From positions 13,082,001-13,146,000 of the forward strand of contig NC_043014.1 of assembly GCF_006345805.1 (NCBI RefSeq): a DNA stretch of 64,000 nt, read 5' to 3'. Each line of letters opens with the position of its first letter. Positions within the stretch are counted from its first letter, which is position 1. The notes below the pieces were generated by a model. The model had not been told where the DNA came from, ran no database searches, and saw only the letters and a list, made by a program, of their open reading frames with translations. Source of the stretch: Octopus sinensis. Lineage: Eukaryota. A program made the position numbers and the translations under genes. Shown here piece after piece: positions 5,949 through 64,000 of the stretch.

Positions 5949-6559
5949 TACACAGAAAAAAAAACAAGGAGAGAAAAAATGCGTGTAGGAGCTAACGATC
6001 TATCATGGCGTTCTGACTTTGGGGTCAGATGCTAGAGGGACAGTAGGGGAGATAACAGGGTCAAGTGACTTCCAAAACGAAGGTGTCCCCAACACAAAGG
6101 TGCGTGTGTGTATAAGAGAGTGTGAAAGAGGGCTGGTGGTCTAGACGTGTGTATGTATGTGTGGGTGTGGAGATGTGGGAATGGGTGTGTGGGTGGTGTG
6201 TTGTGATGTGATGTGTAATGTCGTATGGTGTAGTGTAGTGTGGTGTGATGTTGTGGGGAGGTGGGGGGCGAGAATGGGGAAAGCCCATGTGGGGTGTGGG
6301 TTCGGCTGGGGGTTGGGGTAGAGTGGGGGTTGTGGGGAGAGTGAGAGGGGGAAAGAATAGAGATGAGGGGAGAGGGGAGGGGGAGAGAAGGGGAGTGAGA
6401 TAGCAGAGAGAAAGAGAGCAGGGGAAGAGGGAAGAAGAAAGAAGAAAGAAGAGGGAAGAAGGGAAAGAAGGGAAGAGGAGGGAAAGAGAGTAGGGGTGAA
6501 AAGATGAAGGACTGAAGAGAAGTAGGAGTCGGGGGGAGGTTAGATGAAAAGGGGGGGAG

Positions 6560-6800
6560 TTGAGCCCAAATGGCGTAAAAGAGCGAAGAGAGAAGATTAA
6601 TCCCTGTTCACGGCGCAAGCGGGAATCCGGATGGCCTCTGTGCAAGGACAATCCGAACACAGACAGGTGTTGCAAGGAGTGACCGGTGGAGCGGAAATGG
6701 CGTGAGACTGGTGTGTCATTGGCGAGGCGGATGTCTCGGAGGTGTTCCGCGAACCGGTCAGCCAAGCGGCGTCCCGTTTGTCCGATGTACAGGGAATGGC
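6560..6800 (-). mobile_element. Penelope-like element, GIY-YIG endonuclease C-terminal fragment
   Basis: LYIGQTGRRLADRFAEHLRDIRLANDTPVSRHFRSTGHSLQHLSVFGL...RLRREQGLIFSLRSFTPFGLN, followed on the minus strand by long CT/CA-rich low-complexity sequence. Confidence 0.85.
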
Positions 6801-7725
6801 AGAGAGCAGGAGATGCAATAGATGATATTGCTGGAGGTGCAGGTAAAGGAGTCGATGATGGGTGCCGGTGAGGAGGGTATATATATATATATGCGTGTGA
6901 GTGTTCGTTCACTAGTTATACATTAGATAGAGAGGTGGAAGTGAAGTGAGTGAAGGAGAGGAAGAAGTATGAAAGGTGATTAATATTAATACACTTAGGT
7001 CAAATGGTCAAGTGATCATCTGAAGGTAGGGGCGAAAAACGAGAGAAAATTACTCCGAGAGAGAAAGAGGGAGAGATAAATGTTAAGGACGTGCGGTGGG
7101 GTAGAGAAGGAATACTTATTTACGTGATTGAAAAGTTAGCTGAAGGGAACAGTAGATAGAAAGAGAGGGACAGGGGAGGCAGTTGTGTTGAGAGAGGGGG
7201 AGGGAGGTAGAGAGGGGAGGGAGAGAGAGAGAGAGAGAGAGGTAGATTGCGGCAGCGGCGGTGGTGGTGGTGATACTGAAGAGTATTTTTTTTTTAACTA
7301 TTTTTTTCTTATAGTAACCATCGGGTACGCAAAAAAGCCATTATCTATCGTCTGCTCACTTAAGAATTGATATTTGTTTATAAGGGTTAATTTAGCCTAA
7401 ACTCTGGATTCGCAAGAAACATGGCTGAAACTGCCCAAGAAATAATGTGCAGATAGAGGGTACGGACCAGAGAGGAACAGCGAGAAGATATAATAAAAAG
7501 GGGGGAAAAACAATACCGGTGGAGACGTAAGGGAATGAATGTAGACGAACATCAAGAATATTTTTAAAAAGCTAAACTAGGAACGCTATAAAAATACAAA
7601 TCATCTTTCTTTCTTAAATAAACCTTCTTAATTTTTTCCATTCTGTGGAATTTACTCGAGTCTTATTAGTAGATATATATATATCTACTAATAAGGCGCA
7701 GGAGTTAATATTTAGTATTAATGAG

Positions 7726-7895
7726 GCATAGGAGTGGCTGTGTAGTAAGTAGCTTGCTTACCAACCACGTGGTTCCGGGTTCAGTCCCACTGCGTGGCAC
7801 CTTGGGCAAGTTTCTTCTACTATAGCCTCGGGCCGACCAAAGCCTTGTGAGTGGATTTGGTAGACGGAAACTGAAAGAAGCCCGTCGTATATATG

Positions 7896-7935
<40 letters not shown>

Positions 7936-8150
7936 CGTATATGTTTGTGTGTCTGTGTTTGTCCCCCTAGCATTGCTTGACAACCGATGCTGGTGTGTTT
8001 ATGTCCCCGTCACTTAGCGGTTCGGCAAAAGAGACCGATAGAATAAGTACTGGGCTTACAAAGAATAAGTCCCGGGGTCGAGTTGCTCGATTAAAGGCGG
8101 TGCTCCAGCATGGCTGCAGTCAAAATGATTGAAACAAGTAAAAAGAGAAA
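7726..8150 (+). mobile_element. tRNA-derived SINE family A (ggcgcaggagtggctgtgtggtaagtagc...); copies also at about 23948, 27253, 35052, 38902, 49140, 53336, 61192, 63440 (+) and partial copies at about 16070, 32205, 32745, 51250 (-)
   Basis: About 400-bp high-identity repeat with A/B-box-like head, central TA/TG microsatellite and gaaacaagtaaaaga tail. Resembles octopus OK/OR-type SINEs (name not verified). Confidence 0.85.
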
Positions 8151-20634: not shown

Positions 20635-20948
20635 GCAATTCAATATATTTTGATTACAGGGGAAGAGATGAGAGAGACAGGTGGGTGTAGAAATAAATGA
20701 ACATGAGTTTATGACTAAAATGCTTTGTAAAAATAAATACTTTAATACTCAGAAAAAGATGTCAGCCTTCATGTTAAAAAAAAAAGCAGTAAAAAGGTAT
20801 AATTGAATATTTATATAAGTAAATAAGAAAGCATGCATGCATGCATTTATCCATCAATCAATCAATCAATCAATCAAAGTACAGTAGCTGCAGCAAAGTT
20901 ATAATTTGAAAGGGAAACGGACAAGGTGAAAGGAGTGGATAGCATGAG

Positions 20949-22723
20949 TTATCTTTGGGTATCTAATGATTTGGGCTGCCAGACTGGGGCTGTTGATTTA
21001 GGAAGTGCTGGCCGATTCCGAATGATATCTGCTGCTTTTTCAGCGAGCATGCAAGTCGGACCGTTTAAGTTGCCACTGACTACACTGGGCATGATTGAGG
21101 CATCTACGACACGAAGATTCTCAATTCCATAGACTTTAGTGTCAGGGCCGACCACAGCCATATTATCTGATGGATCTCCCATCTTGCACGTACAACATGG
21201 GTGATAGTTACTGTCAGACTTCTGACGGATAAATGCATCGATTTGTTTATCACTTTGGACATTGGGACCAGGAGCTAGTTCCTCACCTCTATAAGGATCA
21301 AAAGCTTTCTGTGCAAATATCTCTCTTGAGAGTTTGACATTATCTCTCATATCTACTACATCTTGTTCAGTTGTAAGGTAGTTAGCAATTATAATTGGAT
21401 GAACCTTAGGGTCTTTAGACATCAATTTCAAATAGCCTTTACTTGTAGGTCTCATAGGACCCACATAAAACTGATAAGCATGACATGAGCCTGCTTTGCG
21501 ACCATGATCATCCAAAGCAGATGGCAGAAAGTGGAATTGAATATCTGGATGTTCTACACCAGGTCTACTACGAATGAAACCTCCTGTTTCAAAATGAGAT
21601 GTAGCACCATCACCTGTAGATGTCAGAAACCATTGAAGTCCAATTTTAATCATGACATGTGGAAACTTCCATTGCGCTTTGTACAATGTGATTGGTTTAA
21701 GACATTTCTGTTGTAAGCAGACTACAAGATGATCCTGAAGATTTGAGCCTACACCAGGTAAATGATTAACAATTGGAATGTCCAGTTTTTTAAGGTCATC
21801 AGCATTGCCAATACCAGAAAGCATGAGAAGTTGTGGGGAATTGATAGCACCACCACTTAGAATCACTTCCTTGTTGGCCCTTACTTGGTGAATAACACCT
21901 TTCTGTTCGTACTCAATGCCAACTGCTTTGTTACCTTCGAAAAGGATCCTCCTGGCAAATGCATTTACTTCAGTGTCTAGGTTTGGTCTTTTTAACGACT
22001 TCCTCAGGTAAGCACTAGCTGTACTCCACCTCTTACCCTTGTGAACAGTCATGTCCATCCAACCAAATCCTTCTTGCTGGTAGCCATTCATATCATCAGT
22101 GAATGGGTAACCAGCTTGAACACCAGCATCAATGAAAGCTTGGTGCAGCTCGTTATTAGATTTACCCTGAGATACATGCAAGGGCCCTTCTCCTCCCCGA
22201 TATTCATCAGGACCCAGTTCATGTGTCTGAGATTTACGGAAATAAGGTAAACAGTCTGCATATGACCAGTTCAAAGCCCCTTCCTTTTCCCATCGGTCAT
22301 AATCAAGAGCATGACCCCGAATATATACCATTGCATTTAGAGAAGATGACCCACCCCAAACACGGCCCCTTGGCCAATACATTACTCGGTTGTCCATGCC
22401 TCTCTCCGGTTCTGTCATGTAGTACCAATTATATTTATCATCACATAGGTTGTATATCAGAGCTGCGGGCATGTGGATCTTCCAAGTATAGTCCTTTGGA
22501 CCAGCTTCCAATAGAAGTACAGTATTGTCAACATCTTCTGTAAGGCGATTACTGAGGACACACCCTGCAGACCCGGCCCCAACAACAACGTAACTATATT
22601 CCTTGGTGGCTGTTACTGAGTCTTTTGAAGATGTACTAAAATAACGACCAGTCGATTGGCTGCCTGAGAAAGGAGGTCGATGATGGCAGTGGGCAGTCAA
22701 CATACCAGGGTTTATCGGCAGGG
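20949..22723 (-). CDS. CHDH: Choline dehydrogenase-like terminal exon, distal copy (altered active site)
   Basis: Intact, 1775 nt, same acceptor. 29 aa differences from the proximal copy by my count, including DHLEVYI>DHLVVCL and SAYHP>SNYHP. Confidence 0.92.
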
Positions 22724-24372
22724 CTAGAGGGTAAGAGAAAGATGAATACAAAGTAGGATATAGTAGTATAAATACAGCAGACAACAGTTATATATAAACT
22801 CACTATTAAAAGCAGACAAATAAGTAATTTGATAACTTCTTCCAGGCCCAAGATTAGAAATTTAAGAGAAAGGGACAGTTGGTTATATCAACCCCAGTAA
22901 TTTACTAGTACCTATTTTATGAACCACGCAAAGAATGAAAAAGGAAAAGCATATGATGTGAACTCAAAATATAAAGTGTCATGTTTAAAAATGAAGGAGC
23001 ATGGCCTTATGATTAGGGTGTTGTACTCCCGATTCTGAATACCTACTTCTTTACTAACCACAAGGGGCCAAACACAGAGGGGACAAACAAGGACAGACAA
23101 ATGGATTAAGTCGATTACATCAACGCCAGTGCATAACTGGTACTTAATTTATTGACCCCGAAAGGATGAAAGGCAAAGTCGACCTCGGCGGAATTTGAAC
23201 TCTGAACGTAACGGCAGACGAAATACCGGTAAGTATTTCGCCCGGCGTGCTAACATTTCTACTAGCTTGCCCGATTCTGAATACCAGTCAAATTATAGAG
23301 TTTACTGGGTACTTTTTACAAGGCACCAGCATTAGTGAGGTCACCAAGAGCATGCTTGTACATGGTTGTTTGTGTGAATGTGTTTGTATTTTCCTCATCT
23401 TCACATGTGTTCACTTGCTAATTTCTAAGCAATGGCTTTACTGATGTTATTATTTGCTTGTAGTTCACTGCGAAAGCATGTACAGGATGCTTTTTCAGTT
23501 CTATATTTAAGAGATGAGGAATTATGTACATTATTTACATTTGACGGATATTTGTCCTCATCTTGTTTGTTGTTAACACAACATTTCAGCTGGTATACCC
23601 TCCACCCTGCTTCAGGTGTCTTGGGGAAATTTCAAACCCGGGTTCTCATTCCTACGGTATTTTTTGATGTTATTTTTATTGTTATTGTTCAGGTCACTGT
23701 TTGGAATTGAACTCGGAAACTTGGGGTTAGTAGCCTGCGCTCTTAACCACAACGCCATATGCTTTTTGCTTGGTAGATTGGGTGATAATTGTCTCACATG
23801 GAAGCAAATGGAGGCTGGGCAACAGGAAGAGCATACAGCCATGAAAATCTCTGTCCCAACAATGACAACTGAGAGTGGTACAACATTCAGAGATAAGACT
23901 GAATGACTCTTAAAACTTTAAGGTCTCTGCACAAGAGACCTTGTTTATGGCACAGGAGTGGCTGTGTGGTAAGTAGCTTGTTTACCAACCACATGGTTCC
24001 GGGTTCAGTCCCACTGCGTGGCACCTTGGGCAAGTGTCTTCTACTATAGCCTCGGGCCAACCAAAGCCTTGTGAGTGGATTTGTTAGACAGAAACTGAAA
24101 GAAGCCTGTCGTATATATGTATATATATATAAGCGTGTGTGTATTTGTGTGTCTGTGTTTGTCCCACTAGCATTGCTTGACAACCGATGCTGCTGTGTTT
24201 ATGTCCCCGTTACTTAGCAGTTCGGCAAAAGAGACCGATAGAATAAGTACTGGGCTTACAAAAGAATAATTCCTGGGGTCGAGTTGCTCGACTAAAGGCG
24301 GTGCTCCAGCATGGCCACAGTCAAATGACTGAAACAAGTAAAAGAGTAAAAGAGTGTATACACACATATATA

Positions 24373-24430
<58 letters not shown>

Positions 24431-27413
24431 TAGAATACATTGGTTGCTGCATAGCAGCAAAGTTATAATCCTTTAGACAAGAGAAAAGGAAACATAACAT
24501 GAAAGGGAGTGAAAGGAGTGGGGATAGCATGAGTTATCGTTGGGTATCTAATGATTTGGGCTGCCAGACTGGGGCTGTTGATTTAGGAAGTGCTGGCCAA
24601 TTCCGAATGATATCTGCTGCTTTTTCAGCAAGCATGCAAGTTGGACCGTTTAAGTTGCCACTGACTACACTGGGCATGATTGAGGCATCTACGACACGAA
24701 GATTCTCAATTCCATAGACTTTAGTGTCAGGGCCGACCACAGCCATATTATCTGATGGATCTCCCATCTTGCACGTACAACATGGGTGATAGGCACTATC
24801 AGACATCTGACGGATAAATGCATCGATTTGTTTATCACTTTGGACATTGGGACCAGGAGCTAGTTCCTCGCCTCTATAAGGATCAAATGCTTTCTGTGCA
24901 AATATCTCTCTTGAGAGTTTGACATTATCTCTCATATCTACTACATCTTGTTCAGTTGTAAGGTAGTTAGCAACTATAATTGGATGAACCTTAGGGTCTT
25001 TAGACTTCAATTTCATATAGCCTTTACTTGTAGGTCTCATAGGACCCACATGAACTTGATAAGCATGATATGGGCCTACTTTGCGTCCATGATCATTAAC
25101 AGTAGATGGTAGAAAGTGGAACTGAATATCTGGATGTTCTACACCAGGTCTACTGCGAATGAAACCTCCAGATTCTAAATGAGATGTAGCACCATCACCT
25201 GTAAAAGTCAGAAACCATTGAAGTCCAGTTTTGATCATGACATGTGGAAACTTCCATTGTGCTTTGTACAATGTGATTGGTTTAAGACATTTCTGTTGAA
25301 TATAGACTTCAAGATGATCCTGAAGATTTGAGCCTACACCAGGTAAATGATTAACAATTGGAATGTCCAGTTTTTTAAGGTCATCAGCATTGCCAATACC
25401 AGAAAGCATGAGAAGTTGTGGGGAATTGATAGCACCACCACTTAGAATCACTTCCTTGTTGGCCCTTACTTGGTGAATAACACCTTTCTGTTCGTACTCA
25501 ATGCCAACTGCTTTGTTACCTTCGAAAAGGATCCTCCTGGCAAATGCATTTACTTCAGTGTCTAGGTTTGGTCTTTTTAACGACTTCCTCAGGTAAGCAC
25601 TAGCTGTACTCCACCTCTTACCCTTGTGGACAGTCATGTCCATCCAACCAAATCCTTCTTGCTGGTAGCCATTCATATCATCAGTGAATGGGTAACCAGC
25701 TTGAACACCAGCATCAATGAAAGCTTGGTGCAGCTCGTTATTAGTCTTACCCCGAGATACATGCAAGGGCCCTTTTCCTCCCCGATATTCATCAGGACCC
25801 AGTTCATGTGTTTGAGATTTACGGAAATAAGGTAAACAGTCTGCATATGACCAGTTCAAAGCCCCTTCCTTTTCCCATCGGTCATAATCAAGAGCATGAC
25901 CCCGAATATACACCATTGCATTTAGAGAAGATGACCCACCCCAAACACGGCCCCTTGGCCAATACATTACTCGGTTGTCCATGCCTCTCTCCGGTTCTGT
26001 CATGTAGTACCAATTATATTTATCATCACGTAGGTTGTACTTCAGAGCTGCGGGCATGTGGATCTTCCAAGTATAGTCCTTTGGACCAGCTTCCAATAGA
26101 AGTACAGTATTGTCAGTATCTTCTGTAAGACGATTACTGAGGACACACCCCGCAGACCCGGCCCCAACAACAACGTAACTATATTCCTTGGTGGCTGTCA
26201 CTGAGTCTTTTGAAGATGTACTAAAATAACGACCATTCGATTGGCTGCCTGAGAAAGGAGGTTGATGATGGCAGTGGGCAGTCAACATACCAGGGTTTAT
26301 CGGCAGGGCTAGAGGGTAAGAGAAAGATGAATACAAAGTAGGATATAGTAGTATAAATACAGCAGACAACATTCATAAATAAGCTCACTATTAAAAGCAG
26401 ACAAATAGGTAATTAAGGGAAAGGGACAGTTGGTTATACCAACCCCAGTAATTTACTAGTACCTATTTTATGAACCACGCAAAGAATGAAAAAGGAAAAG
26501 CGTATGATGTGAACTCAAAATATAAAGTGTCATATTTAAAAATGAAGGGTCATGGCCTTGTGATTAGGGTGTTGTACTCCCGATTCTGAATACCAGTCAA
26601 ATTATAGAGTTTACTGGGTACTTTTTACAAGGCACCAGCATTAGTGAGGTCACCAAGAGCTTGCTTGTACATGGTTGTTTGTGTGAATGTGTTTGTATTT
26701 TCCTCATCTTCACATGTGTCCATTTGCTAGTTTCTAAGCAATGCCTTCACTGATGGTATCATTTGCTTGTAGTTCACTGCGAAAGCATGTACAGGATGCT
26801 TTTTCAATTCTATATTTAAGAGATGAGGAATTATGTACATTATTTACATTTGACGGATATTTGTCCTCATCTTGTTTGTCATTAACACAACGTTTTGGCT
26901 GATATACCCTCCAGCTTTCATCAGGTGTCTTGGGGAAATTTCAAACCTGGGTTCTCATTCCTACGGTATTTTTCGATGTTATTATTATTATTATTGTTCA
27001 CTGCTTGGAATCGAACTCGGAATCTTGGGGTTAGTAGCCTGTGCTCTTAACCACTATGCCACATGCTTTTTTTTTGGTAGATTGGGTGATAATTGTCTCA
27101 CATGGAAGCAAATGGAGGTTGGCAACAGGAAGAGCATCTAGCCATGAAAATCTCAGTCCCAACAACAACAACTGAGAGTGGTGCAACATTCAGAGATAAG
27201 ACTGAATGACTCTTAAAACTTTAAGGTCTCTGCACAAGAGACCTTGTTTATGGCGCAGGAGTGGCTGTGTGGTAAGTAGCTTGTTTACCAACCACATGGT
27301 TCCGGGTTCAGTCCCACTGCGTGGCATCTTGGGCAAGTGTCTTCTACTATAGCCTCAGGCCGACCAAAGCCTTGAGAGTGGATTTGTTAGACGGAAACTG
27401 AAAGAAGCCCATC

Positions 27414-27458
<45 letters not shown>

Positions 27459-30400
27459 TGTGTGCGTTTGTGTGTCTGTGTTTGTCCCCCTATCATTGCT
27501 TGACAACCAATGCTGGTGTGTTTATGTCCCTGTTACTTAGCGGTTCAGCAAAAGAGACCGATAGAATAAGTACTGGGCTTACAAAAGAATAAGTCCAGGG
27601 GTCGAGTAGCTCGATTAAAGGCGGTGCTCCAGTAGAAGACACTTGCCCAAGGTGCCACACAGTGGGACTGAACCCAGAACTTACCACACAGCCACTCCTA
27701 TGCCTCATTAACATTAAATATTAATTAACCTGAAGATTGACTGTTTTTGTCTCATATCTCATTGCTGATAATAAAACAAGTAACAATATGATTCAGGATT
27801 CAAAGGCAGTGAGCTGGCAGAATCGTTAGCATGCCAGGCAAAATGCTCCACAGCATTTTATCTTTATGTACATTCTGAGTTCAAATCCTGCTGAGGTCGA
27901 CTTTACCTTTCATCCTTTCAAGGTCAATAAAATCAATACCAGTTGAGCACTGAGGTTGATCTAACTGACTTACCCTCTTCCCCGAAATTGCTGGCCTTGT
28001 GTCAAAATTTGAAACCAATATGGTTTTGAGTTCAAATGAATGCACCATCTACCACCCAATAGATGACAACCTTGTGCCTGCTGAAAAAATATGCAATTCA
28101 TAAAGCAGTAAAAACCACTCAAACATGCTTAGTTGAACACAAAAAAAAAAAATAAGGAAAAAAAATGATTAATATTTTGGTTGCAACAAAATTTGAAGAG
28201 GGAAAGTTTGCTGTAAACAGGATTTAAAATGGAAAAACAAGCAATAATAATTAATAAATTGGATAACATGTGGAATGCATTTATGGCCATTATAAAACTG
28301 TTTAACCCTTTAGTGTTTAAACGGGCCATATCTGGCCCAGATATTCTACATGTTTTATATTCAAACTGGCCATATCTAGCCTCTCACACCTAACCTACAG
28401 TGACATTAAAAAAATAAACAATCACATCATTGAAACCTCAAAGCTATAACATAATGCATGATTAATTCAAAACAATTTGAGTGAAAAAGTATTACATTTA
28501 ACAGAGTAATCTGAACACTGAAGGGTTAATCTTTTAGCATTTAATCTGGTCATATCCAGCCCAAATATTCTACTGGTTTTAAGTTAAAACTGACTAGATC
28601 CAAACCCTCATACCTACGCTACAATATCATTCTAAATATATACAAACACACCATTGGGATCTTAAAGCTACAAAACAAAGTGTGATTAATTTAAAACAAT
28701 GTGAATAAATAAGCAATACATTTGACAAAGAAATTTAAATGCTTATGGTTTATATTTGAGATACATTAAATAATACAAGGAGCCAACCAAATGTTTATTA
28801 TTATTATTTTATTGTTGGTATTATTACAGTGCTGAGCTGGCAGAATTGTTACCGCGCTGGACGAAATGCTGCGTGGTATTTTGCCTGTCACTATATTCTG
28901 AGTTCAAATTCTGCCGAGGTTGATTTTGCCTTTCTTCCTTTCAGGGTAAAAAAAATTGAGTACCAGTAAGATATTAGGGTCAATGTTATCAACCAGTCCC
29001 CTTCCCCAAAATTTCAGGCCTTGTGCCTATAGTAGAAAGGGTTATTATTAAGGCAGCAAGCTAGCAGAATCATTAGCATGCTGGACAAAATGCTTAGCAG
29101 TATTTTGCCTGTTGCTATGTTCTGAGTTCAAATTCAGCCAAGGTCGACTTTGCCTTTCATCTTTTCACGGCTGATAAATTAAGTACTAGTCAAGTACTGG
29201 GGTTGACATGATCAATCCCCCCCGTCTCCCCCCCCCACAAAAATCCAGGCCTTGTGCCTATAGTAGGAAGGATTATTGATATTTTGGAATAAAATGCCTT
29301 TTACATATTTCAAAAGTAAAATACAAATCAGTTTAAACGACAAAAACCATTGAAGTTTTGAACTGAAAACATCAAAGGTTTCATCATTTAATTTAATTTG
29401 TTATTCTCTTTCAAATATTGAGGAAAGGTATTTTATACAGAAATATCAGAATTATATTGAAACCCTCCACTACACACAGACACATATATTATTAAACAAA
29501 GATTTTATTGTAATAATTTTTCATTTAATCACAAAAATAAAAAGATAATACCTCACCATGAAAAAATATGTATTGCAGAGCAAAGACTCTGATATGAATC
29601 TGAACATTTTGTGTTAGATTCTCTCAAGGACCAAATCATACAAATAAAAACAGAAAATATTAAAAAACGTTTTGGAAGGAAGTTTATAGTTTTCCTGACA
29701 CGCGCAGAAGAGACTTGTAGCTTAATCATCATCTGTGATGGGTAAAACATAATTCTGAAAGAATTTTCGTAAAAAGGTAAAAAGGAAAAAGTTACTTTGT
29801 TGTGTCTAGGGAGGGTCATTATGCCACTATAATTAATACATGCACTGGTTCAGTTCCACTTCTTTATTATTAGTGAATTGGTTAAATATCCAACTAACCA
29901 ATCAATTGTTTGTTAACTTGGTTAATTAGTAACTCATTTGCAAGTAGCAACAAAAGAGCTTTGACAAACAAAAACAAAACAAATGATTTACTGTTTAACC
30001 AAATTAAATAAACAATCAATTTGCTTCACTATGATAGATCGCAATACACATTCTATATTTTCTCTCCTTGTTTCTTTCTGTGGAAGAGCATAGGCTCGAA
30101 ACATTAAAGATTTTTTCACTTCCCGAGCATTATACTAATACATCTGTTTGTTGTCTACACCACCTGTCTTCGTCTTTTATTTTTTTTGTGAATTCTCTCC
30201 ATATATTACACACTCACGTGGCTGCACCAGTTGATCCTGTCTCCTCTCATCATCCACGAATTCTACACTTCTACGGATTCTACCTGTCTTCTCTCATCAC
30301 CCACCAACTTCTACTGGACTTTCTACACTTCAGCTGCACCTCTCCTGCCTATGGATTACACTGAACTCCTCTGTTGACGAAGAATCCATTAGTTAGTTGG

Positions 30401-32745: not shown

Positions 32746-35700
32746 CAACGGGCTTCTTTCAGTTTCCGTCCACCAAATCCACTCCCAAGGCTTTGGTCGG
32801 CCCAAGGCTATAGTAGAAGACACTTGCCCAAGGTGCCACGCAGTGGGACTGAACCTGGAACCATGTGGTTGATAAGCAAGCTACTTACCACACAGCCACT
32901 CCTATGCCTATATGTATACAAAATATGTATATATTTTGTTTGTGTTTGTATTGCGAGATTCTTCATGTGACCTTTTTTTAAAAAATTTTGTTGCATGTTA
33001 GGAGGGTCATCAGGCCAACAATAAACACATGTACTGGTTTTATTTCACTTCTTCATTTTTGAAGAAGCCTGAAGTAGAGTATGTCACTGATGAGATCACA
33101 AATGAAAAGAACTTTGACAAAACTAGGCGATTTATTGATGATTAAACAATTGATAATTTAATTGGTTAAATGATTAACCAATCGACTAATGAATATAAAA
33201 AAGTGAACAAGAACCAGTGTGTGTGTTTGCTTTTATATGTATGTATATGTGCATTCCTGCATTTATTTATTATGCTTGAAGCTCAACAACACACAATTTT
33301 CACCGGTAAGAGTAAAGATCCTAAAATAGGGAAATTTGAAGGATTGTTCTGATACAAGAGATGTAGGTTCAAGTTCCATGGGCAGTATTCAACTTTTTCT
33401 ATCCAAAGGTTTGTTTTTTTTTTTAAGCCAATATTTAGATGCTACTATTTATAGCTTATCTGCTTCAAGATTCAATGTTCCATAAAAGCACTATTTCAGG
33501 TTCTGCTGAAGTTCGTAAAATTCCTATCCTGTCAATGACAAATATCATATTTAATATTACATAATTGTTTTTATATCTTGGGAAATTTTTAGTTTTATAA
33601 GGTTATTCATTGAGTTAGATGTTTCATTTAATTGAAGAATTGTACGTTTAGAAGATTAGCTTAACTTCTTGTTCAGTGAGTACTTTTAGGATGAGCTATA
33701 TAAAAGATGTTAATAGAAATGGTATATATATATATATATATTGTTGCCAGAGCAGCTAACTGGCTTCTGTGCCGGTGGCAGGTAAAAAGCACCATTCGAG
33801 CGTGATCATTACCAGCGTTGCCTTACTGACACTTGTGCTGATGGCACGTGAAAAAACATTCCAGCAAGGTCGTTGCCAGTGTCGCTGGACTGGCTCCTGT
33901 GCAGGTGGCACATAAACACCATTTGAGCATGGCTGTTGCCAGTACTGCCTGACTGGCCCGTAAAAGCACCCACTACACTCTCGGAGTGGTTGGCATTAGG
34001 AAGGGCATCCAGCTGTAGAAACTCTACCAGATCAAGATTGGAGCCTGGTACAGCCATCCGGTTTGCCAGTCCTCAGTCAAATCATCCAACCCATGCTAGC
34101 ATGGAAAGCGGACGTTAAACGATGAAGATGATGATGATATAGGATAAAATTAAAGTTTAAATTTAAAATTTACATGTTGGGTGTGTCCCTAGTAGTATGA
34201 TGATGATAAAGCACATTCACTGCTTATGGCTACCTGGCATCATCCACAGTAATAGCACAATCATTGTTGGATCGGTGTTAGGAATTCCTTAATGCACGTT
34301 GAGTATAGTAGAAACAATGGATGGAGTATACTGGAAACTTTGTTTATCACAACGATCATTTTGACACATCCTGCATCGCTCTCTTGCGGGTGGGAAACTA
34401 TACCATGACTTACGGTGCAGAAGCATCCCATCAGGTGTAGATGTACTTTTATAACATTTTGACTCAGCTCCATAAGACTTAATGTTACATGGGTGCACAG
34501 GACATACCCATCTCATCAAATATGGTGACAGACTTCACGAAATGACTGAAAAATCCAATAACCTGGAAGATACTAATGCATCTACCAAGCAGGTAATAAC
34601 TGTAGATTATTGTCTCAAACAATGTGATCTTGTTATGATCTAAAGTTGTAATAAAATTAGTAAAGATGTTCCACAAGGATCTGAAGTTTTTATATATTGA
34701 GGCCTACTCACCATTCTTTCAGGTGAAAGACTCATAGGGCTGGCTCCCAGGCTTCTGTGGCACATATATTTTCCCTTCCTGGATAGAACACCAGTCCATC
34801 ACAGGATTACTCGCTTTTGTCAGCTGAGTGAACTGAAGCAATATGAAATGAAGTGTTTTGCTCAAGAACACACTGCATCACCAGGGCCAGGAATCGAAAC
34901 CACAATATTACAATCACGAGTCCAATACCCTAACCCCTCAGCAAATCACCTCCACATCAACTGAAATGCAGGAGGGAACAGGTTATATCTCGGATGAAAC
35001 CAAGGTTGCTTCAAAAAACAACCATTGTCTGCAGTTTGAGTTTTTTTCATAGGCGCAGGGGTGGCTGTGTGGTAAGTAGATTGCTTACCAACAACATGGT
35101 TCTCGGTTCAGTCTCACTACGTGGCACCTTGGGCAAGTGTCTTCTACTATAGCTTCGGGCCGACCAATGCTTTGAGTGGAATTGGTAGACAGAAACTGAA
35201 AGAAGCCCGTCGTATGAATGTATATATATATATATGTGTGCGCGTGTGTGTTTGTGTGTCTAGCATTGCTTGACAACCGATGCTGGTGTGTTTATGTCCC
35301 CGTCACTTAGCGGTTCGGCAGAAGAGACTGATAGGATAAGTACTGGGCTTACAAAGAATAAGTCCCAGGGTCGATTTGCTCGACTAAAAGCGATGCTCCA
35401 GCATGGCTGCAGTCAAATGACTGAAACACGTAAAAGAGAGTATTGTCTGCAGTTTCTTGAGTGTATCTCATGAAGCACTCCATATTCAACACGATACTCT
35501 TTGTCTTACTGTTGCATCCCTGGGGTGGTTCCATAAAGTTGCCAATATTGTTACTGAAGAATTCAATTATAAGCATTATTTCCAGTGGTTACTCCAGCAA
35601 GTCTTCAATAGATGAACTCGAGTCTAACTTCTCCAAATCCGTATTTCACTTTCATTGGCAAGCACAAGGGTACATTTGAAGAATTCCACCAGTATCATTC

Positions 35701-38700: not shown

Positions 38701-41700
38701 GTCATGCAAGCACAGAAAAGTGGACCTTAAACTGATGATGATAGGGTTTCATCAAAATACTGGGAGTGCATCTTTTGAACACCATTCCATGAATGGAAGA
38801 CACTGAGCTACGAAAGGTTAAGAAGCGCCATTTTACAATGAATTATCTTTTTTTTTTGTTGTTCTTGTTTCTAATAAAATAATCTATTTTATTAACATAA
38901 GTGCAGGAGTGGCTGTGTGGTAAGTAGCTTGCTTACCAACCACATGGTTCCAGGTTCAGTCCCACTGCGTGGCACCTTGCGCAAGTGTCTTCTACTATAG
39001 CCTCGGGCCGACCAAAGCCCTGAGTGGATTTGGAAGACGGAAAGCGAAAGAAGCATATATATATATATATGCATGTGTGTGTATATGTTTGTGCGTCTGT
39101 GTTTGTCCCCCCAACATCACTTGACAACCGATGCTGGTGTGTTTACATCCCCGTAACTTAGTGGTTCGGCAAAAGAGACTGATAGAATAAGTACTAGGCT
39201 AACAGAGAATAAGTCCTGGGGTCTATTTGCTTGACTAAAGGCAGTGCTCCAGCATGGCCACAGTCAAATGACTGAAACAAGTAAAAGAATATTTAATCTA
39301 GAATAATCTAAAACAGACCCCGTCTCTGCAAACAAATACCTTTTTGGTTAACAATCAGAACTTTTACTGGTTTATCTGTGAAGAAAAACAAGCTTTTGAA
39401 TATAATGAATGATTTGTGAGATGAAAATGAAGATGATATTTAAGTAAAGGAATGTTAGCTGAAAGAACAGAGAGAGAGAGAAATAGCTTCCACAGAACTC
39501 AAGACAAACTGTTGTTACGAGGTTTGTCAATTGAAATAGATCCCAGCATATTTTAAGTATTAAGTGTATTTTATCAGAAATCAGAAAGAAGCCAAGTAAA
39601 AATTAAGGGAACTACATAGGCATAGGTATGATTGTGATTAAGGTCACTTTGCAACCACATAGTTTTGGGTTCAGTCCCACTGCACAGCACCTTGAACAAG
39701 TGTCTTTTACTATAAGCCTTGGGTTGATCAATGCCTTGTGAGTGACTGCAGTAGAGGCAAGCCATTTGGAAGCTTCCCATATTAAAATCGGTGGACTCAT
39801 TTGTTGAGGACAGCAGATAATTTTTTGTAACTAAACACTTTCAAATTTCGGACACTGGTAGAATGTCTCATATAAAACATATTCTACTCTTAACATTTTT
39901 TAGAAAAGCTTATATTTAGGAAGTTATTTCATGTTAAAGTTCTTGGATTTCAGTAATTTCAACCAATCAATGACGTGTATTCAGCTGAATAAAATTACTG
40001 AATACATGTCATTGATTGGTTGAAATTACCGAAATAGGCCTACTTTGACGTGAAATTACTTCGTAAATATAAGCTTTTCTCAAAAATGCTAAGAGTAAAA
40101 CATATTTTATGACACATTCTACCAGTGTCCGAAATTTGAAAGTGTTTAGTTACAAAAAATTATTTTTAAAATCTGTACGTCAAAAGGTAAAGATCCCAGA
40201 TGAATGTTCCACAGCTTCCTGCTGAACAACCTGCACAGGTAATTTGTTTATATCAATCAAACGTCAGGTGCCAGCGATTGCAGAGCAACATAAAAATGAA
40301 GTGTTTTGCTCAAGAACTCAATACACTGCCTGGCCCTGATCTTGCGGTTTTGAATGCTACATGCCTTCTCTATCTCACACACACTTACTTGTACTTGTGG
40401 CGACATTCACCCTGGGCGGGTTGAGTCAGCTTCTACTACTCTCGAGGCATCTTGAACCATGGCAGCCCACGCATGATGGTCCTGCGTCAGTTCACTGGAG
40501 ATAGCGAGCCAGTCACAGTTCCATCGGCGCAGACTGACCACCTGCGGTCCCGTGAGCATGGAGAGGTCCTCCTTGATCATTGTAACCCAGGTCTTCAGCT
40601 GCCCGCCCGCGCGTTTCTGCCAGTTGGGAAGTGGAGTTGGGAGAAGGACATCATGGCTCAGTTCACCCACCGGACGCCTACATGCATGGCCAAACCACCG
40701 CAAGTGCCGTTGCAGAAGGACAGATGGAAGGGGCCACAGAGACAGGCGAAGTCGGAGATAGGCAGTGGGAACTCGATCCACCCGATGGCAGCGAAGAATG
40801 CACTGGAACCAGTCATTGTCGAAGACTTCCAGCCTTCATTGATCGACCACCCGCATAGGCCACGTTTCACAGCCATAGAGAAGTACTGTAAGAACAGTAC
40901 ACACATGTAATTGTGTGCATATGTAACTGGTATTGGTTTGTTTACATGCCCCTAATTTGGCAGTTCAGCAAAAGAGCCAGTAAAATAAGTACAAACTCAA
41001 GAAATAAGTACTTGGGTCAATTTTCAACACTAAAACACTTTAAAGCAGGCAGTGGCCAAGCATGCCGATGCCCAATGACCGAAAGAATTATAAAAGGTGA
41101 AAGATATACAGAATTTAGTTGAATGTTTTGTCCTCAGCCCTCAGCATCTGCACAGGTCAAAAGTTTTAAAATATTACCTGTTCAATAAATGTGCCAGGTA
41201 CTGCTGCACTCAACTGATTGTCTTAAAAATAAGATTTATTCTTCTTCATTACAGACTCACCTCCACCTCCACCACCATCACACAAAAACTGTTTTAGTTC
41301 ATGAAAATACAAAAACCTAGAAGAAAACAGGTGCAACCAGTTTATTCTATATCACAGTGCAACAGATAAGGTGAGGTTAACTATTTGAATGATTAATTAG
41401 TGAAAGTGTAAATGAAGCAAACTAGAAGCAGGTGACAGGTAAATGCAATTTATTAATTTTCTTTTGCAAATGAATCAAATTTCAATACAAACTTTTACAA
41501 TTTTTTGCTGTTATCTAATTCATGTAAACTTTTTGTTCCTTTGAAAAATTTGGAAATTGGTCTAAACTGTTGGAATTGTTAAAGAAGGGCAGTTAGAATC
41601 TCTGAAGTAAATGAAGAATTTTAATATGGTTTTCTTTAAAAAGAATGTTAAAATAATTAATACTGCTAAGAAATTTTAAAAAAAAGGGAATCATTTAATA

Positions 41701-44700
41701 AAATAGGAAGAAAGAAATGGTTGAGGAATGGATGGTTAAACTAAAAGAGCAAGACATCAAATTCCCAAATTTCTCACAACAGATTTGTTCTTTTTCATTA
41801 CAGGGGAAGAGAATAGAGAGACAGGTGGGTGTAGAAATAAAATGAACATGAGTTTATAACTAACAAGCTTTGTAAAGGTGAATACTTTAATACACAGAAA
41901 AAGATGACAGTCTTCTTGTAAAAAAAACAATTAAAAAATGCAAAACAGAATATTTATATATACACACATATATATGTATATATATATATATTATATATAT
42001 TTACAATTAGAATACATTGGTTGCTGCATAGCAGCAAAGTTATAATCCTTTAGACAAGAGAAAAGGAAACATAACATGAAAGGGAGTGAAAGGAGTGGGG
42101 ATAGCATGAGTTATCGTTGGGTATCTAATGATTTGGGCTGCCAGACTGGGGCTGTTGATTTAGGAAGTGCTGGCCGATTCCGAATGATATCTGCTGCTTT
42201 TTCAGCAAGCATGCAAGTTGGACCGTTTAAGTTGCCACTGACTACACTGGGCATGATTGAGGCATCTACGACACGAAGATTCTCAATTCCATAGACTTTA
42301 GTGTCAGGGCCGACCACAGCCATATTATCTGATGGATCTCCCATCTTGCACGTACAAGATGGGTGATAGGCACTGTCAGACATCTGACGGATATATGCAT
42401 CGATTTGTTTATCACTTTGGACATTGGGACCAGGAGCTAGTTCCTCACCTCTATAAGGATCAAATGCTTTCTGTGCAAATATCTCTCTTGAGAGTTTGAC
42501 ATTATCTCTCATATCTACTACATCTTGTTCAGTTGTAAGGTAGTTAGCAACTATAACTGGATGAACCTTAGGGTCTTTAGACTTCAATTTCATATAGCCC
42601 CTACTTGTAGGTCTCATAGGACCCACATGAACTTGATAAGCATGGCATGGGCCTACTTTGCGTCCATGATCATTAACAGTAGATGGCAGAAAGTGGAATT
42701 GAATATCTGGATGTTCTAAACCAGGTCTACTGCGAATGAAACCTCCAGATTCTAAATGAGATGTAGCACCATCACCTGTAAAAGTCAGAAACCATTGAAG
42801 TCCAGTTTTGATCATGACATGTGGAAATTTCCATTGTGCTTTGTACAATGTGATTGGTTTAAGACATTTCTGTTGAATATAGACTTCAAGATGATCCTGA
42901 AGATTTGAGCCTACGCCAGGTAAATGATTAACAATTGGAATGTCCAGTTTTTTAAGGTCATCAGCATTGCCAATACCAGAAAGCATGAGAAGTTGTGGGG
43001 AATTGATAGCACCACCACTTAGAATCACTTCCTTGTTGGCCCTTACTTGGTGAATGACACCTTTCTGTTCGTACTCAATGCCAACTGCTTTGTTACCTTC
43101 GAAAAGGATCCTCTTGGCAAATGCATTTACTTCAGTGTCTAGGTTTGGTCTTTTTAACGACTTCCTCAGGTAAGCACTAGCTGTACTCCACCTCTTACCC
43201 TTGTGAACAGTCATGTCCATCCAACCAAATCCTTCTTGCTGGTAGCCATTCATATCATCAGTGAAGGGGTAACCAGCTTGAACACCAGCATCAATGAAAG
43301 CCTGGTGCAGCTCATTATTAGTCTTACCCCGAGATACATGCAAGGGCCCTTCTCCTCCCCGATATTCATCAGGACCCAGTTCATGTGTCTGAGATTTGCG
43401 GAAATAAGGTAAACAGTCTGCATATGACCAGTTTAAAGCCCCTTCCTTTTCCCATCGGTCATAATCAAGAGCATGACCCCGAATATACACCATTGCATTT
43501 AGAGAAGATGACCCACCCCAAACACGGCCCCTTGGCCAATACATTACTCGGTTGTCCATGCCTCTTTCCGGTTCTGTCATGTAGTACCAATTATATTTAT
43601 CATCACATAGGTTGTACATCAGAGCTGCGGGCATGTGGATCTTCCAAGTATAGTCCTTTGGACCAGCTTCCAATAGAAGTACAGTATTGTCAGCATCTTC
43701 TGTAAGGCGATTACTGAGGACACACCCTGCAGACCCGGCCCCAACAACAACGTAACTATATTCCTTGGTGGCTGTCACTGAGTCTTTTGAAGATGTACTA
43801 AAATAACGACCAGTCGATTGGCTGCCTGAGAAAGGAGGTCGATGATGGCAGTGGGCAGTCAACATACCAGGGTTTATCGGCAGGGCTAGAGGGTAAGAGA
43901 AAGATGAATGATAAGAAGTTTGTACAATAGATAACAATTATATATAAGTTCACTTTAAAATCCAGACAGAACAAAACTAATACCTGAAGCAAGTGACTAA
44001 TAATATTATAAAATAAGTTAATAATGATTAAATTAATTAAAGAACAAAATAAATAAAAATGACATAAATGCTGCGGTAATTAAGGTGACAAGGGTAAAGC
44101 AAACGAAGCATATCACAAAGGTAAAGGATTACAATACATTCATAATAATAATAATAATAATTCTTTGCCCTAGGTGTCGGGAAGACACCCAGCAAGAAAT
44201 GGAAACATAACTGAAAGAAAAAAAAAATAATAGTAATAAGATCTCTTGCCTGGGCAGTGTTGTAGGAGAAGGCAGCAGAAGTACTCTTTAGAAAGGTACT
44301 TATGATCAACCACTCCAAAACAAACAAACAAATAATAGATAAATAAAAATAAATAAAGTGAAATAAAGAAAAACACCAACAAATCAAACTTTCGAAGCTA
44401 TCAAATCTTCAACATTTTTCTGATTTCTAATATTAGTGTGTCTAGCTAAAAAAATTTCTAACGGTAAGGTACAACCAACTGATTCAACTTTGGTATATTG
44501 CTGGTAGTTATTTTATCAATAATTTGATAAATAGATGAAAGGTTGATAACCATTAAAGACTGCACAGTACTGTTGTTCTCCTGATTCTGCCATCCGACTG
44601 CCCTGGACATACTAATGGCAGCATTAAGACTATTCTGTAGAGACCTGAATAAGTGGAAATCCGAAGGAGCAATATTTGGTGAATATGGAGGGTGGAGTAA

Positions 44701-51241: not shown

Positions 51242-54200
51242 TCTTTACTCTTTTACAGTTATTTGACTGCAGCCATGCTGGAGCACCGCCTTTAGCTGAG
51301 CAAATTGACTCCAGGACTTATTCTTTGTAAGCCTAGTACTTATTCTATCGTTCTCTTTTGCCAAACTGCTAAGTTATGGGTATGTAAACACACCAGTATC
51401 GGTTGTCAAGCGATGTTGGGGAGATAAATACAGACACACAAACAAACATAATATATATATATATAGGTGTACGTTAGTTTAACAGTAGCACGCTTGCCAC
51501 GAATACATAGACATGTGGGTTTGCATTCCATAAATACGGCAACCCCTACTTTTTTCTGTTGAGGGCCTATATGCACCAACATTAGACTATTTGCCTTAGT
51601 CAATGCACAGTGATCACTTATAAAAAATATTATCATTATTCACACACACACACACACGTATGTATATATAGGTATATTTATGCATATATTCTTGTCATTT
51701 AATGTCCAGGTTCCATGCTTGTATGGGTTGGACCGTTTGACAGGATCCGATATATCCAAGGACTGCATTATGCTTCAATGTCTGCTTTAGCATGGTTTCT
51801 AAGGTTGGATGCCCTTCCTAATGCCAACCACTATAAAACTTGGACTGCATGCTTTTTTTTTATGAGCCACCTGCACTATAAATACACATATACGCGCATG
51901 CACACACACATGTATTATGTTTCTTTGCGTGTAATTATGTAATAGTCATATGGAATTAGGAGATCACACAACTGTTGATTTAACGCAAGTAAAGTCCTGT
52001 GGTCATCAAATATGTCCCTTCAGATCTCAAACACTCAAATTACGTACGTACATATATATATATATATAAAAGCAAATATATGTTACATCTATAAACAAAT
52101 GTTACATGTTTCTTTATATATGTGTATGACTTATTTGTTTATATGTACAGGTAACATATAAAAGAATGTTATATATATACACAAGAATATAGATATATGT
52201 AACAAATACATAATAAAAAGAAATATATAAAGAAATATGTTACATATAGAGAGAGAAAAAGGGGGAGAGAGAGAAAATGGGAGGGAAAGCGAGAGCGAGA
52301 ATGAATTTCATTATTCAACGACATAGTAAATGCATCGTCAGGTTATTCAATCATTACCTTTTTTGTTGGAGGGCTGAGGAGATTTGATAATTTTAATGTC
52401 AGAGACTGGATCAAGAAGGTCCCAGGCAGTGGGTAGTATGTGATCAGCGTGGGGTGCAAGCTCAGCTTTCGAACCAGTGCCACTAAGAACCCCAATGCTT
52501 GCCTGTACATGGGCCTTTTTTCCAGAGTTGAGGTTTTTAGCACAGTCACTCACCACTATTGCCTCTGAAGGGGTGACACCCAGTTCATTACAGATCAAGG
52601 ATGTTGCGTTGACTTCGGAGTTGCTGTCGTCTCCACACACCATCATATCCACATACTTCATTAAGCTGAATCGGTCGAGTATCTTGAAGGTTTCCTCGCG
52701 TGCATCTTGTGACATGATAGCAATCTTGATTTTATTTCGCTTCAAAGTTTTGAAAAGATGCTGAAGGTCTCCCAGAACTTTCAGATCTCCATACAATGAG
52801 TTCTTACAGTCTTTCCATGCCTGATTAACAGTCACTAATGATTCTTCATAACCAAGACCTTGTTCTCGAAGAAGTGACTTTAGAGCATCTTTAATCTCGG
52901 CTTTGGGACGTTCCGCAAGGATACCATGCTTCACCTTAAGAGATATTTTACAAATTCCAAGGCGTGAATAAACCTCTTCCATTAGTTCCATGTGTGTTAG
53001 TTCTTCGAGCCTGCAATGAAAAAACAAAGAAATCTTGTATTGTAATTAATAGTTTCAAATTTTGGCACAAGGCCAGCAAATTTCAAGGAAGGGGCAAATT
53101 AATTACATCAATCCCAGTGTTCAACTGGTAATTTATCGACCCCGAAAAGATGAAAGGCAAAGTCGACCTTGGTGGAATTTGAACTCAGATCGTAAAGACA
53201 GACAAAATACCACTAAGCATTTTACCCGGTGTGCTGACAATTCTGCCAGCTCGCTGCCCTAATGTTGCATATAATTAATGTTAACAAATATATAACAGAA
53301 GAAAATAGTTTGAAAGCAACCTTCTTATAGTTAAAGCAGGAGTGGCTGTGTGGTAAGTAGCTTGCTTACCAACCACATGGTTCCGGGTTCATTCCCACTG
53401 CATGGCACCTTGGACAAGTGTCTTTTACTATAGCCTCGGGCCGACCAAAGCCTTGTGAGTGGATTTGGTAGATAGAAACTGAAAGAAGCCTGTCGTATAT
53501 ATGTACATGTGTGTGTGTATGTATGTATATATATGTGTGTGTGTGTGTGTGTGTTTGTCTCCACAACATCGCTTGACAAATGATGCTGGTATGTTTACAT
53601 CCCTGTAACATAGCGGTTAAGCAAAAGAGACCGATAGAATAAGTACTAGGCTTACAAAGAATAAGTCCTGGGGTCGATTTGCTTGACTAAAGGCGGTGCT
53701 CCAGCATGGCCGCAGTCAAATGACTGAAACAAGTAAAAGAGTAAATCTAACTTCATACCAGTCTTATTTCACAGTTAAGGAAAAGTTCTTAGATGTTTTT
53801 GTCTTAGATTTCATTATAATTTTCTCTAGGTATTTTTTGTTTTGTTTTCTTTGTTTTCTTTTATCACATTGCTAATACACATGCTAATCTGTTGCATATT
53901 ACTAACACAGATATGTAGCACATATACGCAAAAAAAAAAAATCGAAAAAGAAAAACCCAAACAACTTCGTATGTAAATTGGTTCTCATATTTCTGTTTCT
54001 GCTGTTAGTCAAGCAAATATCTAAATAGTTTGGATTTTTGTGAAACAGTGTTTCACTTACATAGAAAAGTTCAGCAGCACTTTATGGGTGAAAAGAAAGG
54101 AAAAAATACAGTAATTGGATTGGTTTAGAGAAATGCTTGCTGAAAACTGTACAGCTAAGATAAGATCAAAAATGCTAGTTGCCGTAAGTGACAGAGGTAG

Positions 54201-61019: not shown

Positions 61020-61849
61020 CTGCAGAACAAAAACAAAAATAAAATATTAGTGGAATGCAGATGAGGGTTTTATATATTAATTTTGTAAACAGGATAATAA
61101 AAAAAAAATTAAAAAATTAAAAGCAGGAAGTGAGATAAGTTTGTGTGCCAGAAAGGAAAGTAACAAGCAACATTTCAAAAATGGAGCAACGGGCGTGGCT
61201 GTGTGGTAAGTAGCTTGTTTACAAACCACATGGTTCCGGGTTCAGTCCCACTGCGTGGCACCTTGGGCAAGTTTCTTCTACTATAGCCTCGGGCCGACCA
61301 AAGCCTTGTGAGTGGATTTGGTAGACGGAAACTGAAAGAAGCCCGTCGTATATATGTATGCGTGTCTATGTTTGTGTGTCTGTGTTTGTCCCCCTAGCAT
61401 TGCTTGACAGCCAATGCTGGTGTGTTTATGTCCCCGTTACTTAGCGGTTCGGCAAAAGAGACCGATAGAATAAGTACTGGGCTTACAAAGAATAAGTCCC
61501 GGGGTCGATTTGCTCGACTAAAGGCGGTGCTCCAGCATGGCCGCAGTCAAATGACTGAAACAAGTAAAAGAGTATGGGGAAATCACCGCACAAATGTCTT
61601 TGAACACAGGTCTGTTTGATTAAATCTAACCTGGAACTAAATATCAATAACATCACATTTCTTTTTATTGAATTCACTAGGTACAAGCATGGCTGTGGTT
61701 CAAAGAAGTTTGTTTTCCAACTGTGCGATTTCAGGTTCAATCCCATTACATGGTACCTTAGGTAAGTGTCTTCTATAACTTGAGTGAAATCAACAGATGG
61801 AAACTATGCACAAGCACATCATTCATATAGAGAGAGCACTTTCCATATA

Positions 61850-63179: not shown

Positions 63180-64000
63180 TACATAGAGAGAGAGACAAGA
63201 GACAGGGATACAATATCCAGGTGGGTACCATTCAAGTACTTAGTTGTAATCCAGGCCAAGGCCAACCACATCAAGCTGAAATGAGCACCTAGAATTACGA
63301 GAGATAAGCAATCCAACTGTATTTTATCCCATAGGTAAATCCAGAGTTCACTTATCTGGATTATGAATATTTAACCAAGTGTATATCCAATTCAGTAACA
63401 AAGAATATGGAGATTAGTACAACTGCATAATTCTTGGTAAGTATCTTGCTTACCAACCACATGGTTCTAGGTTCTAGCCCCCCTGCATGGTTCTAGGTTC
63501 AGTCCCACTGCATAGCACCTTGGGCAAGTGTCTTCTACTATAACCTCGGGCTGACCAAAGCCTTGTGAGTGGATTTGGTAGACGGAAACTGAAAGAAGCC
63601 TGTCGTATATATGTATATATGTTTGTGTGTCTGTGTTTGTCCCCCCAACATCACTTGATAACCGATGCTGGTGTGTTTACGTCCCCATAACTTAGCGGTT
63701 CGACAAAAGGGACCAATAGAATAAGTACTAGGCTTACAAAGAATAAGTCCTGGGGTCGATTTGCTCGACTAAAGGCAGTGCTCCAGCATGGCCAAAGTCA
63801 AATGACTGAAACAAGTAAAAGAGTAAAAGAGTATCCCTCTGGAGCCACCAGCAGCTAAGTGACCTCACTTGTGCTGGCACCATGAAACAAAAAAAAAATG
63901 CACCCATACATGCTGTAAGGTAAATGGAATTAAGGAGAGTATGAAGCCATAGAAACCATGCCAACGCAGACACTGGATAACACAGTGTAACACAATCTTT

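Follow-up and report, generated by a model that had tools for sequence, protein, structure and literature searches.

A divergence island over substrate-pocket positions in the distal copy of a triplicated octopus CHDH module

The octopus Octopus sinensis carries three intact reading frames for choline dehydrogenase (CHDH), a flavoenzyme of the glucose-methanol-choline (GMC) family, all on the minus strand of a 64,000-nucleotide stretch of contig NC_043014.1 (assembly GCF_006345805.1, positions 13,082,001 to 13,146,000; hereafter the window). The most distal of these copies, here called c3, was originally predicted to have acquired substitutions focused on the active site and, with them, a new substrate. 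Comparison of c3 with its sister copies, its homologues and its solved relatives upholds the clustering of the replacements and places several of them at pocket positions; silent divergence is raised in the same tract, which suggests that the cluster records the history of the locus.

The three CHDH copies and the divergence island

The coding sequences of the copies are as follows.

20949-22703, minus strand: c3, distal CHDH coding sequence, 584 codons plus TAA in the open reading frame (ORF) translation, beginning at the Met of MLTAHCHH
24534-26288, minus strand: c2, middle CHDH coding sequence, an intact ORF in tandem with c3
42111-43865, minus strand: c1, proximal CHDH coding sequence, nearest of the terminal exons to the HAD-HAD' exons that precede it

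Residues of all three are numbered from the Met of MLTAHCHH as 1. Pairwise identity among the copies is about 95-97%, and c2 and c3 sit in units that form a head-to-tail repeat of about 3.6 kb (20926-24309 versus 24509-27632). Each copy scores above the 732.1-bit cut-off of the NCBIfam betA equivalog TIGR01810 (c1, 763.3 bits; c2, 760.4; c3, 752.1). The c3 protein has the GxGxxG dinucleotide-binding motif as GAGSAG at residues 42-47, a GMC_oxred_N domain at residues 36-327 (Pfam PF00732, E=7.6e-58) and a GMC_oxred_C domain at residues 419-554 (Pfam PF05199, E=5.9e-37). Its AlphaFold2 model (predicted local distance difference test [pLDDT], 80; predicted template modeling [pTM] score, 0.85) matched BetA 9lq0 and choline oxidase 2jbv in Foldseek with template modeling (TM) scores of 0.91 and 0.90, and the top 30 GMC structures among the matches listed spanned TM scores of 0.82-0.93, normalized to the target. 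The only close relative in the searched protein collections was XP_014788184.1, a 283-residue model from O. bimaculoides that is 96% identical over the parts covered and lacks residues 120-477; the next match was 76% identical, and no other octopus CHDH proteins were found in those collections.

Between c1 and c3, 29 of 584 residues differ, 23 of them between the DHL and YHP motifs, with Cys503, just past YHP, making a 24th if counted. This agrees with the 24 of 29 claimed earlier, and the replacements quoted then (DHLEVYI>DHLVVCL, HLES>HFET, PSTVND>PSALDD, YQVHV>YQFYV and SAYHP>SNYHP) were all found at their codons. The catalytic pair, His501 of YHP and Asn545 of NLNGPT, is retained in c3, as had also been stated. 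At the nucleotide level, 41 bases are specific to c3 (c1 and c2 agree and c3 differs), 26 of which fall within codons 327-428, a segment of 306 of the 1,752 bases. A likelihood scan returned these codons as the best window, with a score reached in none of 300 permutations (P<1/300). This divergence island encodes the DHLE strand, a CHDH-specific helix, the HLES loop, the His391 strand, the 396-398 loop and the YQVHV strand. The island and its most relevant codons, together with codon 499 downstream, are listed here.

21420-21725, minus strand: divergence island, codons 327-428, with 26 of the 41 c3-specific changes (17 nonsynonymous and 9 synonymous by Nei-Gojobori counts)
21723-21725, minus strand: codon 327, GAA>GTA, Glu>Val, the equivalent of choline oxidase Glu312
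21465-21467, minus strand: codon 413, CAT>TAT, His>Tyr, in strand 409-416, aligned with choline oxidase Thr376
21207-21209, minus strand: codon 499, GCC>AAC, Ala>Asn, the equivalent of choline oxidase Val464, two residues ahead of catalytic His501

Changes on the c3 branch were counted by the Nei-Gojobori method, with the majority of the three copies taken as the ancestor. In the island, the 9 synonymous and 17 nonsynonymous changes correspond to a proportion of synonymous differences (pS) of 0.137 and of nonsynonymous differences (pN) of 0.071, giving a pN/pS of 0.52; in the rest of the gene, pS is 0.022, pN is 0.007 and pN/pS is 0.33. Island pS is six times that of the rest (Fisher P=3e-4; P=0.013 with purely synonymous codons only), and the ratio of nonsynonymous to synonymous changes does not differ between the two (P=0.52). 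A nonsynonymous-to-synonymous rate ratio (omega) above 1 in the island on the c3 branch was not supported (one-sided P=0.96). Because silent and replacement sites are raised alike, the island points to a different history and not to selection on the protein. The N-terminal half had been described as almost unchanged, which is correct, and its silent sites are likewise almost unchanged; its similarity is therefore attributed to homogenization by gene conversion and not to stronger constraint.

An island pN/pS of about 0.5 implies that constraint on c3 is relaxed yet still present; the corresponding island values are 0.18 for c1 and 0.14 for c2. The c3-derived changes sit at less conserved positions (mean conservation of 0.69 versus 0.78 for random positions, P=0.07), and c3 deviates at 4 of the 230 positions that are at least 95% conserved in the family, the same number as in c1 and c2. 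The frame of the island is intact, and it holds no indels, whereas neutral evolution at the flank ratio should have left about two to three (P 0.05-0.12). Judged from these counts, the island is under relaxed but real purifying selection, with neither free decay nor a signal of positive selection.

The copies also change partners along their length. Rooted on the outgroup P0001, c2 has derived states in common with c3 at codons 156, 184, 200 and 251 and with c1 at codons 354, 425 and 495; c3 pairs with c2 in the N-terminal half, and c1 pairs with c2 in the island. The switch of topology between the N-terminal half and the island (4:0 versus 2:8) has a P of 0.015. Divergence is similarly uneven in and around the genes: across the N-terminal coding parts of the three copies it is only about 1.8%, against 5.6% in the intron shared upstream of c3 and c2 and about 21% between the 3' flanks of c3 and c1; the 3' ends of c1 and c2 are nearly identical. 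XP_014788184.1 mixes c3 states (V58 and N499) with c1 states (M83, M495 and S503), so mosaics occur in a related species too. With replacements polarized by the family majority and the outgroup, I354T, L425M and probably A404V are derived on the c1/c2 side within the island. At codon 354 (42804-42806 in c1, 25227-25229 in c2), c1 and c2 have Thr, versus Ile in c3 and in 117 of 120 homologues; by this comparison the two “reference” copies depart from the family inside the island as well.

The substrate pocket of the distal copy

Pocket positions were mapped from an alignment to choline oxidase and from published contact lists. Residues 1-529 of 2JBV were checked against the Protein Data Bank (PDB) and then aligned with the family profile; c3 and choline oxidase are about 30% identical. 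The 2JBV sequence confirms the landmarks on which the original prediction drew, namely, Glu312 within DHPE and Val464 two residues ahead of His466. Six equivalences are secure: E327 with Glu312, H391 with His351, A499 with Val464, Y500 with Tyr465, H501 with His466 and N545 with Asn510. In choline oxidase, glycine betaine is contacted by W61, S101, I103, W331, H351, V464, Y465, H466 and N510, the positive charge of the trimethylammonium group is steadied by E312, and M62, L65, V355, F357 and M359 form the gate (PMC10980864); N378 and H351 belong to the beta-sheet beneath the substrate (PMC10991250).

Other positions were matched at the level of probability. L371 is the probable equivalent of Trp331: it stands just before strand 373-377 in the model, and the match is also favored by the C-terminal profile alignment and by the offset of choline oxidase relative to 9LQ0 in phmmer; against this assignment, the full-length profile alignment sets Trp331 on the invariant W358 instead. 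Residues 396-398 probably correspond to Asp358-Met359-Asn360 of the gate loop, H413 probably to Thr376, two residues ahead of Asn378, and position 83 (M in c1, K in c2 and I in c3) probably to Trp61. The changes in c3 thus fall on the equivalents of Glu312 and Val464, on the probable equivalent of Trp331 and in the gate loop, 355-359. The middle copy has changes of its own in this neighborhood, M83K (26040-26042) aligning with the ligand contact Trp61 and C87R (26028-26030) with the gate residue Leu65. As aligned here, the lid region is also diverging between the copies, position 83 being different in all three.

Conservation at the changed positions was counted in the 120 closest CHDH homologues. 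Position 327 is Glu in 111 of them, Asp in 8, Asn in 1 and Val in none; position 413 is His in 118 and Gln in 2, with no Tyr; His501 and Asn545 are invariant. The distal copy therefore lacks the acidic DHLE residue of CHDH, with Val327 where 119 of the 120 homologues, BetA, c1 and c2 have Glu or Asp, and it lacks His413, with Tyr on the strand under the substrate. Among 137 wider GMC representatives, compared by sequence only, position 327 is occupied by D (30), E (24), A (16), Q (11), G (10), S (9), L (6) and V (6), so that 83 are non-acidic, DHLV and DHVV motifs among them.

Asn499 occurs in 6 of the 120 homologues, mostly alongside D327, C329 and F371, and also in XP_014788184.1. Bivalve paralogues from Mercenaria mercenaria (P0030) and Ruditapes philippinarum (P0038) have the combination D327/C329/F371/N499 and share Cys329, Phe371 and Asn499 with c3, and one from Argopecten irradians (P0119) has N327/F371/D499, of which c3 shares F371, together with Gln at 413. 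These paralogues keep an acid at 327 or 499, whereas c3 has none at either; all except P0119 keep His413, and Tyr413 is found in c3 alone. Overall they are no nearer to c3 than canonical CHDHs are. Since positions 327, 329, 371 and 499 vary together, with an acid at 327 or 499, we argue that they line one pocket.

The best solved relative of the copies is the bacterial choline dehydrogenase BetA of Pseudomonas denitrificans (9LQ0, E 5.5e-180), which resembles c3 in having Phe at 371, has Ala at 499 and differs in having Glu323 and His407 where c3 has Val327 and Tyr413. L371F therefore introduces a residue that BetA already has, and not every change points away from choline. A literature search found no description of the 9LQ0 structure or of a role for its His407. 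The DHxE and xYHP motifs of choline oxidase CodA (Arthrobacter globiformis, 2JBV and 4MJW) align without gaps with those of c3, which has Val and Asn in place of Glu312 and Val464; c1 and c2 keep the Glu. A helical insertion of 25 residues in c3 (342-366) is absent from choline oxidase, and choline oxidase His99, the site of covalent flavin attachment, is Leu122 in c3. Invertebrate CHDH and HAD-CHDH proteins (Branchiostoma belcheri Bbelb_010790, Mytilus californianus and Ptychodera flava “CHDH-like”) are 65-76% identical over the whole catalytic module; among these and the three octopus copies, c3 alone has no acidic residue at 327.

The predicted HAD-HAD'-CHDH gene and its surroundings

Upstream of c1, the window contains exons of a HAD-HAD' module, which is phosphatase-like, and a splice acceptor precedes each CHDH copy.

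59483-59574, minus strand: exon A (3' part), with HAD motif I VIFDKDGT and donor AA/GTAAGT
56443-57258, minus strand: exon B, with the first HAD core and then the degenerate HAD' motif I IIDLHGT, in frame with exons A and C
52358-53010, minus strand: exon C, the core of the second, degenerate HAD', with a degenerate motif IV and donor AAG/GTAATG at 52357, phase 1
22724-22740, minus strand: splice acceptor of c3, polypyrimidine tract plus AG (TTTCTCTTACCCTCTAG), 20 bases upstream of the c3 ATG

The same acceptor sequence stands ahead of c2 (exon start 26308) and c1 (exon start 43885) as ahead of c3 (exon start 22723). Joining the exon C donor to the “CC” that opens each CHDH exon yields an in-frame GCC codon (Ala), and the A-B and B-C junctions are also in frame; the junction K/A/LPINPG is present in the O. 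bimaculoides RefSeq model. The catalytic motifs of HAD' are degenerate, DxD being DLH and GDxxxD being SDCAKN. Many lancelet, hemichordate and mollusc homologues are HAD-CHDH fusions of about 800-900 residues, of which a literature search found no description; unlike those fusions, the octopus locus has two HAD units, the second degenerate, and three CHDH exon copies. Given the in-frame splice junctions and the HAD-CHDH fusion homologues, the three CHDH copies are best understood as duplicated terminal exons of a predicted HAD-HAD'-CHDH fusion gene (52358-59574, minus strand, with CHDH exons starting at 43885, 26308 and 22723). HAD exons lie upstream of c1 only in the window. The other two CHDH copies, c2 and c3, might serve as alternative last exons, might be translated from their own Met or might go unused.

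A further candidate exon at 33266-33388 (minus strand), a homologue of exon 1 in the O. bimaculoides model, was rejected, as its frame is shifted and it has no GT donor. The sequence is tRNA-like and resembles a short interspersed nuclear element (SINE); it is therefore probably an exonized repeat in the O. bimaculoides model and no real exon here. Long ORFs are sparse in the window and microsatellites many. A SINE-like repeat of about 400 bases recurs in more than 10 copies at 80-92% identity across the window, including 7730-8150, 23949-24350, 27257-27632, 35051-35440, 38905-39290, 53338-53745, 61192-61575 and 63488-63830; the intron sequence that c3 and c2 share upstream contains one copy ahead of each of them. 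At 23038-23271, solely between c2 and c3, an unrelated repeat has been inserted. The ORF at 6061-6912 (minus strand) has a GIY-YIG-like motif (YIGQTGRRLADRFAEHLRDI) followed by low-complexity sequence, and is presumably akin to the endonuclease end of a Penelope-like retroelement.

History of the tract and predicted function of c3

We give a slightly better than even chance to concerted evolution by gene conversion, in which c3 keeps one older or imported tract under relaxed constraint. Under this model, c3 would be the third of three duplicated single-exon CHDH modules behind one HAD-HAD' module, and gene conversion would hold most of the coding sequence of the copies within about 2%. The c3 tract, codons 327-428 with a tail to 499, would have an older or foreign history, having either escaped homogenization or come from a more diverged paralogue outside the window. 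That it encodes the first half of the substrate-binding domain would be happenstance, and E327V, A499N, L371F, TVN>ALD and H413Y would be among the changes because it does so. The original prediction was right that the changes lie at the active site, insofar as pocket equivalents are altered in the 2JBV alignment and loss of the Glu is unusual for a CHDH; the focus, however, is explained by the mosaic and did not hold up as a mark of selection, given the equally raised silent divergence, the pN/pS of 0.52 and the topology switches. The island does not represent a known older paralogue clade: over its length 110 of 120 homologues are nearer to c1, and the best c3-like homologue gains just 5 of 102 positions. 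Searched alone against 5.8 billion proteins, the island found no match above 71% identity.

Several observations weigh against concerted evolution as a complete account. Replacements in the island are asymmetric, with 13 derived on the c3 side versus 3 on the c1/c2 side (P=0.02), and 3 of the 10 choline oxidase contact or anchor equivalents are changed (hypergeometric P=0.004, a post hoc test that assumes L371=W331); both exceed what a passive mosaic predicts and so leave room for selection. The changes are also micro-clustered inside the island (P about 0.03), with 5 changes in 11 bases at codons 327-330 (21714-21725), 4 in 7 bases at codons 396-398 (21510-21518) and 3 in 5 bases at codons 411-413 (21465-21473), a pattern that could fit short conversion tracts or multi-base mutation events. 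No donor of the island besides the three copies was found by tblastn or blastn within the 64-kb window. Finally, the counts are small (9 synonymous and 17 nonsynonymous), and the outgroup is only 76% identical, so that silent sites are not reliably polarized.

The asymmetry and the contact enrichment are what adaptive neofunctionalization would produce, had positive selection refitted the pocket of c3 to an alcohol other than choline, perhaps an uncharged one, and had selection against conversion kept the tract distinct. E327V removes the only acidic anchor without an acid at 499 to replace it, non-acidic residues at 327, DHLV and DHVV included, are found in 83 of the 137 GMC representatives, and 327, 329, 371 and 499 co-vary in the mollusc paralogues (D-C-F-N in P0030 and P0038, N-F-D in P0119); the frame and catalytic pair of c3 are intact, and N499 is shared with the O. 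bimaculoides copy. Such a history is nevertheless unlikely in our judgment, as the island has a pN/pS of 0.52, fails the test for omega above 1 and is equally raised in synonymous divergence, the c3-derived changes show no preference for conserved positions, I354, L425, K495 and probably A404 of c3 are ancestral states lost in c1/c2, and L371F yields the residue of bacterial BetA 9lq0. A more elaborate version, in which a single HAD-HAD'-CHDH gene uses the CHDH exons alternatively as its terminal exon and the c3 isoform has been neofunctionalized for an alcohol without a quaternary ammonium group, its island protected from conversion by selection, strikes us as rather improbable.

Relaxed constraint might instead herald decay in progress, with a redundant, poorly expressed or unexpressed c3 whose 5' two-thirds are repaired by conversion from c2 or c1 while the unconverted tract drifts toward loss of function. 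Two near-invariant residues, E327 (Glu or Asp in 119 of 120) and H413 (118 of 120), are gone, island pN/pS in c3 exceeds that in c1 and c2, the c3 3' flank is strongly diverged, c3 lacks HAD exons of its own, with just 1.75 kb separating it from the stop codon of c2, and the sole related octopus gene model with N499 misses residues 120-477. We nonetheless regard ongoing decay as doubtful: no stop or frameshift interrupts the 584 codons, pN/pS is below 1, the changes tend away from conserved positions with no more deviations than in c1 and c2, the betA equivalog cut-off is passed and the splice acceptor is intact. Uniform pseudogene decay as the sole explanation was rejected on the intact frame and the pN/pS below 1. 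An assembly artifact, whether c2 and c3 as uncollapsed haplotypes or the island as a chimeric mis-join, might be suspected of copies so close together and about 95-97% identical, yet it is highly improbable, since the head-to-tail 3.6-kb c2/c3 unit has its own insertion (23038-23271) and several indels, unlike typical haplotig duplication, the flanks of c1 differ and an N499 copy exists in a related species.

Whatever the history of its tract, c3 has an intact flavin domain and catalytic pair and could, therefore, still oxidize an alcohol. Its sole acidic anchor is lost and none is gained at 499, so that choline binding is predicted to be much weaker, by analogy with Glu312 variants of choline oxidase (Quaye et al. 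2008). Those variants reportedly show a rise in Kd of at least 500-fold for E312Q and inactivity for E312A. A reasonable prediction is that c3, if expressed, would be a competent flavoprotein with much weaker choline binding; a loss of choline specificity is a fair prediction from the replaced residues, and oxidation of another alcohol substrate is possible.

If c3 is active on another substrate, it would represent a young, datable change of specificity in an animal GMC flavoenzyme, with c1 and c2, which differ from it at only about 29 residues, as natural controls and with positions 327, 371, 396-398, 413 and 499 as candidate specificity residues. The locus is a compact case of concerted evolution with a divergence island, a combination that can mimic “active-site-focused” selection. 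Where paralogues exchange sequence, a cluster of replacements calls for a comparison with silent-site divergence ahead of any claim of selection.

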